Shown here: one piece after another, positions 1-4,440 of the stretch
Layout: every line of letters begins with the position of its first letter
Numbering within the stretch: the first letter of the stretch is position 1
Sequence record: NC_027402.1
Length of the DNA stretch: 64,000 bases
Direction: 5' to 3' (one strand)
Position numbers and translations under genes: made by a program
Notes under the pieces: model-generated
Told to the model about the DNA's origin: nothing
Seen by the model: only the letters and a program-made list of their open reading frames with translations
The model's database searches: none

Positions 1-260
1 CTTTTTAAAACAATCACTTAGATTGTTTTTTAGATCGATCCTGTGGATCGGGTCGAAGACCCTTTCCTTATACGCGTGCGCGTGCGCACACCCGTATCCT
101 CCAGGATCTTTTAAAATATATAATAATATTAAATATAATAATACCTTTAGGTATTATATTTAATTATTATAATTATTTATATAAATAAATATATTAATAT
201 ATTAAGATCTTAAAACGCGTGCGGGCGCGCGCGTGATCCTTATTAAGAGATCGTGATCGG
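1..260. other. Origin-of-replication-like element (AT-rich palindromic core, GATC cluster)
   Basis: Almost pure A/T core at ~109-214 with nested palindromes, flanked by ACGCGTGCG blocks; 8 GATC sites at 33,37,46,105,206,235,249,255. Function is inferred. Confidence 0.5.
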
Positions 261-399
261 ACAGACGTCCTGGTTTGGGTACCCTGTGTATTTTTTACGT
301 GGTTTCCCTATCGTGTGTTCAGACCACCACTCGATGTCCAAAACCCATAGCTTCGGTGGCCGCCTCCCTGGACGGCAGACTCTGACAAGTCGACCCACA

Positions 400-1135
400 C
401 CACCAACCCGTCCGGGGACGGATTTTTATTCCAACGACAAGCTCCACGAAAATCCCCGCAGAGGGACTCACTGCTGTGTGACTCACCGGCTCCTGGACGC
501 CTACGCCTCGAGCCGGTAATTTTTTGATTACGTGAGTTTGTTGTTATATGCGAATAGCGATTGACCGCGCCAATGGTCCAATCACTTTTAAACCCTGCAC
601 GCTAGGGCTCCAAGTCCTGGGATTGTTACCCAGGACGCTTTTTCGAAAATACCTACCGTGGTGTCTTCGACAAAGCGCAATCTAACACTGCGTGATTTAT
701 TATGTTCTGGAAAACTTTCGCCGTGGAACAGAACCGGTGAGCGTCGGCGGGGATTCCGACAATCACCACCCATTCAGGTACTCGGTAAATAACCGACCTG
801 CCGACGGTGCTACGTCGGGCGTAGTTCGGTTTGCGAGAGTGTCGAGAAAGTCGACTGCGCACCCATGACAAAATCCGAGTTGACCGTGGCAGCGCCAGAG
901 GACTGGGCAGCGGAGAGACGTCGTTGAACTTACCTCCGATAGTTATCGCTGATTCCGCTCTGGCGTCGGGCCAAAACTGATTCGAATTCGGCGTTGCGTC
1001 GAAAAGGGGTCTGCGTGTAGAACCGCAGACTTGGGGGATAACTCCGATGAGGAGGTTGGTCCATATCTTGCCGGCTCGGAACAGACGAGAGGGGTGGGTA
1101 CTCCCGTTGAGAAACGACGGTACCTGGCTGATTAA
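400..1135. ncRNA. Candidate structured non-coding region
   Basis: No credible CDS; many inverted repeats (e.g. GTCCTGGG/CCCAGGAC 614-636, GCGCCAGAG/CTCTGGCGT 892-966, GTCTGCG/CGCAGAC 1009-1030). Confidence 0.3.
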
Positions 1136-1185
1136 AATTTACAGATTCTGCGTGAGGTATGATAAACCAAACGGAGAATTAAATC

Positions 1186-2999: not shown

Positions 3000-3073
3000 A
3001 GCAGCGAAGTTAGAGGAATTAACACCCGACTCATAATCGGATATTTCGACGGTTCGAATCCGTCCGTTTGCTC
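3000..3073 (+). tRNA. Degenerate tRNA with CAT anticodon (Met or Ile2)
   Basis: D stem GTTA/TAAC, anticodon CCGA-CTCATAA-TCGG, T arm GACGG-TTCGAAT-CCGTC; bulged acceptor stem, A at position 8, no CCA directly after the discriminator. Confidence 0.7.
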
Positions 3074-4278: not shown

Positions 4279-4368
4279 ATTAGCTAACGCCCAGTAGCTA
4301 TGTTCCTGACGATTAGCCCTCGTCTGACCTTGTAAGACCTTGTAGATTTACATGCCAACACCAGGGAA

Positions 4369-4409
4369 GTCCTCACTCTTCGGAGTGAGGACAACTCTTT
4401 TATTTTTTT
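4369..4409 (+). terminator. Rho-independent terminator
   Basis: GTCCTCACTC-TTCG-GAGTGAGGAC followed by a T-rich run. Confidence 0.85.
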
Positions 4410-4426
4410 GTATTCCAAATATTTGC

Positions 4427-4440
4427 AGATAGATATTACC
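4427..4440 (+). promoter_or_regulatory. Putative early (virion RNAP) promoter
   Basis: AGATAGATATTACC; motif recurs upstream of early genes and resembles the phiKZ early TATTAC element. Confidence 0.65.

Follow-up and report, generated by a model that had tools for sequence, protein, structure and literature searches.

The genome of Salmonella phage SPN3US (JN641803 / NC_027402, 240,413 bp, genus Seoulvirus), which is included in a listing of the nucleus-forming Chimalliviridae (PMC13282480), begins with a 260-bp element that our comparisons establish as a unique, selectively maintained cis-acting site, with a core predicted to melt easily and putative recognition blocks at both edges. We tentatively read positions 1-260 as a Dam-modulated unwinding site that may well be a replication origin, and regard the element as the best candidate so far for the place where replication, or possibly DNA packaging, of these phages starts. 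The searchable literature on phiKZ-like nucleus-forming phages describes neither an origin nor an initiator, a pac site or a small terminase, and it contains no account of this element or of an origin or pac site in SPN3US-like phages. A single, sharply defined and conserved candidate makes the question of the start site directly testable. The window analysed here comprises bases 1-64000 of the SPN3US genome, which it matches at 100% identity. An earlier, sequence-only reading of the window had proposed an oriC-like replication origin or unwinding element, or else an anchoring or packaging site; the broad cis-acting interpretation has been strengthened by the uniqueness, duplex stability, conservation and GATC content of the element, but the oriC-like specifics did not hold up.

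The element lies in a gap of ~1.7 kb without genes, ~3.9 kb past the large terminase gene terL (234,363-236,474), since the last plus-strand gene before the end of the record stops at 239,882 and genes resume at 1186, the start of the HslV-like peptidase gene that is the first of the SPN3US record. The late packaging and structural gene block ends at the element. An Rfam search of positions 1-1185 gave zero matches. The element and the features that follow it are made up as listed here, with coordinates as positions in the window.

1-29, plus strand: upstream conserved motif CTTTTTAAAACAnnnACTTA, with invariant columns T4, A9, A12 and A16-T19 in 9 phages
30-62, no strand assigned: left GATC-rich variable spacer, with GATC at 33, 37 and 46 and small hairpins at 36-50 and 50-62
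63-92, no strand assigned: left GC-rich clamp, with an alternating purine/pyrimidine run at ~68-90 that contains ACGCGTGCG
93-112, no strand assigned: boundary block C.T.TCCT.CAGGATCTTTT, invariant (C93-T112) across the 9 aligned phages, which represent 4 genera
109-213, no strand assigned: A/T core, candidate DNA unwinding element, 105 bp with 6 G/C letters
138-157, no strand assigned: central G/C-containing palindrome ATAATACCT-tt-AGGTATTAT, from palindrome comparison with relatives
214-234, no strand assigned: right GC-rich clamp (ACGCGTGCGGGCGCGCGCG), from composition, alignment and single-strand fold
231-258, no strand assigned: right conserved block GCGTGATCCTTATTAAGAGATC plus GTGATCGG, with GATC at 235, 249 and 255
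291-317, plus strand: promoter-like TTTTTTACG-N14-TGTG, which bounds the element, lies outside it and reads rightwards
327-1185, plus strand: transcribed structured leader upstream of the HslV-like gene, from RNA-seq contigs and RNA folding (z -3.9)

A hairpin with a 10-bp stem is found upstream of the element at ~240367-240391 of the genome (~4368-4392 of sequence L155), and at ~2352-2375 of the Asesino sequence L003. Both of its arms differ between genera, GTAACCGACA...TGTCGGTTAC versus GTAATTCGCA...TGCGAATTAC, and it could serve the upstream unit as a terminator or RNA element.

The most extreme property of the element is the composition of its core. The sequence-only reading had described ~105 bp of nearly pure A/T with GC-rich blocks on both sides, and this description was borne out: apart from the core at 109-213, no stretch of 50 bp or longer in the 240,413-bp genome reaches 90% A+T, and ACGCGTGCG blocks at 72-80 and 215-223 bracket the core. 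The 245-kb genome of Wellington, too, has a single A/T island of this kind. The least stable 100-bp duplex of the SPN3US genome falls at the core, with a dG of -87.9 kcal/mol against a mean of -140.1 ± 6.1 (z 8.6), followed by the next independent 100-bp window at z 4.6. Alternating purine/pyrimidine runs of 15-25 nt, as read from the sequences, are present at the GC clamps in all genera. The left and right clamps can pair, and the predicted single-strand fold of 62-262 is one extended hairpin (-34.4 kcal/mol, z -4.5).

The core had also been described as built from nested palindromes. All four palindromes quoted are present, but those made of A/T only do not rise above dinucleotide shuffles: their longest arm is 9, compared to a shuffle mean of 8.0, and the 9 arms of at least 6 (4.7 ± 2.8 in shuffles) are a count reached by 8.7% of the shuffles. 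Most relatives have one or two short palindromes with G/C in the core, with arms that change together between lineages (ATCT/AGAT, TCCC/GGGA, and CCC/GGG to CTC/GAG), and the cores of Wellington and SNUABM_11 have zero. Such two-arm changes would be in keeping with a role as a hairpin or cruciform, or with a dimer site that co-evolves.

These structural features raise the question whether the element could work by its shape, with neither initiation nor cutting; for instance, it might take up supercoils as a cruciform or as Z-DNA, be a strong site for a topoisomerase, or anchor the DNA in the phage nucleus. The long imperfect dyad with GC-rich, alternating purine/pyrimidine arms is in line with this, as is the single copy of the element. 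No precedent ties such a role to these sequence blocks, however, and the invariant 20-bp block suggests sequence-specific recognition over structure alone; we consider a purely structural or topological role very improbable.

Conservation in related phages had been suggested as a check, and the element proved to be kept in four genera while its flanks diverge. The alignment comprises 9 phages from the genera Seoulvirus, Erskinevirus, Machinavirus and Wellingtonvirus. Within Seoulvirus (e.g. SPFM4 and related strains), the element is 97.8% identical, the upstream flank 93.8% and the downstream leader 92.1%. In Erskinevirus (Asesino, phiEaH2 and Stratton), identity of the element is ~81% (62-260), the upstream flank has no match, and the leader matches in one island at 883-1178 (~78%). 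For SPAsTU, Wellingtonvirus and Machinavirus, the element is 70-80% identical and the leader is reduced to a short core near 1050-1140; the upstream flank gives none or a short weak match, apart from SPAsTU, in which ~70% identity extends over most of it.

Three blocks carry the conservation within the element, and each of them occurs as a single copy in the SPN3US genome. The upstream motif at 1-29, written over the alignment as TTTTAAAA.CA...ACTTA, is kept in all 9 aligned phages and remains single-copy even with 4 mismatches allowed. In SPN3US it forms the 5' arm and loop of a hairpin with 9-bp arms (7-29); it is not a known promoter and does not recur in the genome. The 20-bp boundary block at 93-112 is the second, and the third is the right block of 22 bp (GCGCGTGATCCTTATTA.GAGATC), which is kept in 7 of the 9 phages and degenerate in Caitlin and SNUABM_4. 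The left spacer at 30-62, on the other hand, cannot be aligned between genera. Most relatives still have 1-3 GATC there, and several of them carry a hairpin of differing sequence at the equivalent place.

Scans of sequence collections added one further distinct member, a 236,909-bp viral contig (L066), together with several near-identical ones. A scan with a 15-base invariant motif gave matches mostly by chance and 2 true members only. When the A/T island was sought in other chimalliviruses, none was found in Simmy50 (Agricanvirus), PCH45 and RTH11, and Kc263 showed only a small promoter-like stretch and no comparable island. The element is absent from Simmy50, PCH45 and RTH11 and is therefore a feature of the SPN3US-like clade, not general to chimalliviruses.

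A second line of evidence comes from GATC. The claim of 8 GATC sites in 226 bp was confirmed (33-258, with sites at 33, 37, 46, 105, 206, 235, 249 and 255), and it gains weight from a genome that is itself depleted in GATC about two-fold: 489 sites are found versus ~937 expected from base composition, and the window has 131 versus 248 ± 15 expected. The genome is nowhere denser in GATC than here, with eight in 260 bp compared to 4 in the next independent cluster, and the density of the flanks predicts ~0.54 for the element (Poisson P 1e-7). Over 10 phages, the elements together contain 58 GATC compared to 4.9 expected from their own flanks, and the enrichment is individually significant in 8 of these (P 5e-8 to 3e-4). 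The element itself is also kept in Caitlin and SNUABM_4, with 3 and 2 GATC, respectively. Only the site at 105, in the boundary block, is kept in all phages; two more lie within the right block, and the rest are at non-homologous places in the spacers that flank the core and cannot be aligned. By this comparison, GATC at the element is selected as such, and the site shows a lineage-wide demand for Dam sites.

That a cluster of Dam sites should occur in a genome enclosed by a nuclear shell had been noted as a puzzle. The likely answer is a predicted Dam-family methyltransferase of the phage itself, so that host Dam need not reach the DNA in the phage nucleus. SPN3US encodes a 272-aa MethyltransfD12 protein outside the window (96,851-97,666, plus strand; L014:1480-2298; Pfam E 1.6e-54) with a DPPY motif; among solved structures it is closest to E. 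coli Dam (E 3e-52), followed by DpnII methylase 1. From this similarity we infer specificity for GATC, and the sites of the element are probably methylated by this enzyme. Dam homologues are present in all genera that bear the element (Seoulvirus, Erskinevirus, Machinavirus and Wellingtonvirus). The Dam family was not found in Derbicus, Phobos and CR5 by a search in which the positive controls were detected; the co-occurrence of Dam and element is one phylogenetic contrast and not a set of independent events. Searches of SPN3US for MutH, SeqA and DpnII genes found none. The Dam gene of SPN3US-like phages has so far been read in the literature only as anti-restriction, and nothing relevant on a role of Dam or GATC was found in the literature on SPN3US and phiKZ. 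The element gives this gene a concrete role to test.

The third line of evidence is the gene next to the element. gp264 (169 aa, 239,373-239,882) adjoins it and has 13 relatives among 5.8 billion proteins, all of them from the element-bearing clade. gp261-264 have zero Pfam matches and belong to PHROG families of unknown function. The structure model of gp264 is weak (mean pLDDT 70.7, with 1 of 5 models above 50), and Foldseek returned nothing below E = 2 for it. Neither a recognisable initiator fold nor similarity to small terminases was found by Pfam and structure search. A language-model lead that gp264 is a DUF772 transposase DNA-binding domain was unsupported by structure search and has been dropped.

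In Derbicusvirus (Derbicus, Phobos and CR5), the flanking genes are kept, with gp263 ~40% and terL ~70% identical, but the gp264 slot is occupied by an unrelated protein (14-18% identity, hhalign probability 0.1%). The place of the element is taken by a tandem pair of AAGGGGGGAT repeats together with an A/T palindrome, rich in repeats, that measures ~95 bp and contains one GATC (L009:6440-6640 in Derbicus, L010:6450-6620 in Phobos and L011:6440-6610 in CR5). The difference looks like a site-plus-protein cassette that was swapped in a single event, and a joint swap of gp264 and the site is what one would expect if the protein is cognate to the site. More speculatively, the element and gp264 might together form the first known cis-acting start site, for replication or packaging, of nucleus-forming jumbo phages, gated by phage Dam within the shell compartment, with related genera having taken up a different cassette of site and protein at this place; we put this forward as a possibility somewhat weaker than that of an origin as such.

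Among the functions considered, a replication origin best accounts for the extreme unwinding element and its confinement by GC-rich DNA, and also for the hairpins and the transcription that leads outwards next to it. At such an origin, a phage protein would bind the invariant left block and the right block, and negative supercoiling would melt the 105-bp core. Strong rightward transcription from the promoter at 291 would reinforce supercoiling at the core, and the GC-rich clamps would confine the melted bubble. The G/C-containing palindromes could fold in the exposed strands and provide an entry point for helicase or primase. GATC sites methylated by phage Dam might lower duplex stability, or mark hemimethylated new copies, and in this way time the firing. 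The GATC sites of oriC and of P1 oriR provide precedents for an origin of this kind. An engineered or minimised SPN3US-like genome would probably have to retain the element.

The element is without sequence homology to known origins or pac sites, as far as our comparisons reach, and its likeness to these is one of layout. Compared to E. coli oriC, it shares an A/T-rich unwinding region, strong GATC enrichment and a GATC at the edge of the unwinding region, but SPN3US lacks a conserved DnaA box, tandem 13-mers, IHF and Fis consensus sequences and a SeqA or MutH gene; its A/T core is much longer and purer, and the methylase is phage-encoded. The proposed R1-like DnaA box is a single 7/9 match where ~0.7 is expected (260 bp, both strands), and it is absent from every relative. 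Other DnaA matches with at most 2 mismatches occur only inside a core palindrome, in 3 phages, and a search for DnaA boxes (TTATCCACA) found no cluster and none kept across 10 phages. The two proposed oriC 13-mers agree with the textbook consensus GATCTnTTnTTTT at 8 and 6 of 11 specified positions; by our own count they are 130 bp apart on opposite sides of the core, and they do not form a tandem set. Searches of the element gave no IHF consensus and no Fis consensus, and no iteron array of at least 3 direct repeats, only short repeats in two copies. GC skew, proposed as another check, gave no origin signal: cumulative skew tracks gene orientation and is uninformative here because the slopes of plus-strand blocks are inconsistent with one bidirectional origin.

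The iteron-type origins lambda ori, P1 oriR and RK2 oriV are similar to the element in an A/T-rich region that adjoins GC-rich DNA and in a neighbouring small gene that co-varies with the site; they differ from it in that SPN3US has no iteron array and gp264 no recognisable initiator fold. T4 oriF and oriG, a further precedent, consist of a promoter and an A+T-rich unwinding element (PMC3016281). Like these, the element is compact (100-250 bp), belongs to a large virulent phage with its own transcription programme and has an A+T-rich unwinding core, but in SPN3US the recurrent promoter points away from the core and no R-loop RNA is seen in the contigs. Several points count against an origin: gp264 gives no initiator candidate by Pfam or fold, no transcript into the core is seen among RNA contigs, the 291 promoter points away from it, and Caitlin and SNUABM_4 keep the element with 2-3 GATC only. 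The lack of iterons, of DnaA boxes and of a GC-skew signal, the single phylogenetic contrast behind the Dam co-occurrence and the absence of the element from Simmy50, PCH45 and RTH11 weigh against it as well.

The promoter-like motif at 291 is one of a series. TTTTTTAC[AG] has 11 copies on the plus strand of the genome and 0 on the minus strand, located at 291, 5952 and 15473 in the window with eight more elsewhere, and in 8 of these copies T(A/G)TG or T(A/G)TAG follows at the constant offset of +23. The late start motif TATG of phiKZ resembles this spaced T(A/G)TG (PMC7598289), and TTTTTTAC[AG]-N14-T(A/G)TG is probably a promoter class read by the non-virion RNA polymerase of the phage itself. 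In a close relative, RNA-seq contigs begin at 327 and 330, with adapter sequence abutting 330, and extend through the leader, the HslV-like gene and a tRNA to end at 1891 and 2080. The leader is abundant in the RNA-seq contigs, and its core near 1050-1140 is kept across genera (74-84%); for the leader as a whole (317-1185, 869 nt), both a structured 5' UTR and a non-coding RNA are conceivable. No RNA contigs cover 1-326, an absence that is no proof of silence, and words of 1-134 are contained in runs of uncertain kind. A putative early promoter in the core was rejected, because the partial match at 148 (1 mismatch) lacks the flanks of the motif.

This transcriptional setting could also mean that the element is a boundary, which insulates the late operon from the next unit and acts as a methylation-sensitive upstream regulator of the 291 promoter. 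GATC clusters control promoters elsewhere, e.g. at pap and agn43, and terminator-like hairpins upstream, a recurrent promoter ~80 bp downstream with an abundant transcript and the lack of RNA contigs crossing the element are all in agreement with it. The island is unique in the genome, however, and the other ten promoters of the 291 type consequently do without one. The size, extreme composition and two conserved blocks exceed what an upstream promoter element would need, and in Derbicusvirus the promoter of the 291 type, a TTTTTTACA motif, is found just upstream of that clade's element. We therefore judge a control function in transcription to be improbable, though less so than a purely structural one.

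The replication origin has also to be weighed against a packaging site, on which the state of public assemblies bears. Assemblies of short reads regularly fail across 135-202: eight public records open inside the core (query positions 136-208), two metagenome contigs end in it, and for a DNA run with the same sequence as SPN3US the Logan contigs are interrupted at 134/203. These breaks count in favour of a P1-type pac site, in which a terminase-associated protein would bind the GATC arms and cut in or near the core, and Dam methylation would gate late packaging. Their simplest cause is loss of coverage over nearly pure A/T in PCR or Nextera libraries, and the SPFM genomes are Nextera XT and SPAdes assemblies. 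Many assemblies do span the core, and the Logan contigs have equal depth on both sides of the break (35.2 vs 35.7), without any visible step in coverage; the breaks would still be compatible with a hot spot of physical ends. The site matters for the closing of genomes of the SPN3US-like clade and accounts for breaks that occur at one place.

Seven TGATCA/G hexamers are found in P1 pac, which spans ~161 bp and is cleaved under the control of adenine methylation (PMC10028697). The SPN3US site is alike in that GATC clusters flank a central region within ~160-230 bp, in the presence of a phage Dam gene and in its position near packaging genes. P1 has pac hexamers to either side of the region that is cleaved, and also a Dam gene of its own; in SPN3US, the GATC sites are laid out as 3+1, core, 1+3. 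The element follows at the end of the late packaging and structural genes, at a distance of 3.9 kb from terL, and gp264, which adjoins the site and is swapped together with it in Derbicusvirus, has at 169 aa the typical size of a small terminase. Against a pac site, the GATC flanks are not a uniform repeat, as the bases next to GATC vary and leave no common hexamer. The IHF consensus is absent, gp264 is without small-terminase similarity, and the site is intergenic and not inside a terminase gene. It also has GC clamps and an extreme 105-bp A/T core; such a core is a hallmark of origins, and to our knowledge it is no feature of any pac site. phiKZ-like phages are described as headful packagers, as inferred from phiKZ terminase homology, and no classical small terminase has been reported for them. 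Taken with the assembly breaks being explained by A/T coverage loss, this leaves packaging a doubtful though not negligible function, and a replication origin the one that we prefer.

Near the starts of several SPFM deposits (LR535901, LR535903-LR535908, LR535911-LR535913 and LR535917), BLAST returned 4-18 short pieces instead of one, in contrast to the remaining SPFM records, which suggests locally corrupted or error-rich sequence in those deposits.

A protelomerase target of the N15 telRL type, which is a perfect palindrome about TACGCGCGTA, was considered for the element and rejected; the matching block in Asesino is no full palindrome, and a homologue of TelN is absent from SPN3US. An identical stretch of 15 nt, CATTATACGCGCGTA, is shared by the left GC block of Asesino (L003:2505-2519) and the N15 telRL core (L140:1294-1308). 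This identity is probably a coincidence of alternating CG/TA, because SPN3US lacks a protelomerase homologue.

Two further observations concern the window beyond the element. Rfam recognises tRNA-like sequences at 2929-2998 and 3001-3072 (37.1 and 30.6 bits, gathering score 29), neither of which is reported by ARAGORN, and only one of which is annotated in the record, as 'tRNA-OTHER'. The motif aGATAGATATTATCTnnGtGA has ~15 copies in the genome, all on the plus strand and mostly just upstream of a ribosome-binding-site-like AGGAG; it is found in the window at 4430, 7393, 15617, 15710, 23813, 25229 and 28972, and at eight further places in the genome. The motif probably represents the consensus of the early SPN3US promoters, those used by the virion RNA polymerase, and Derbicusvirus has a related form of it, GATATATATTACTT.
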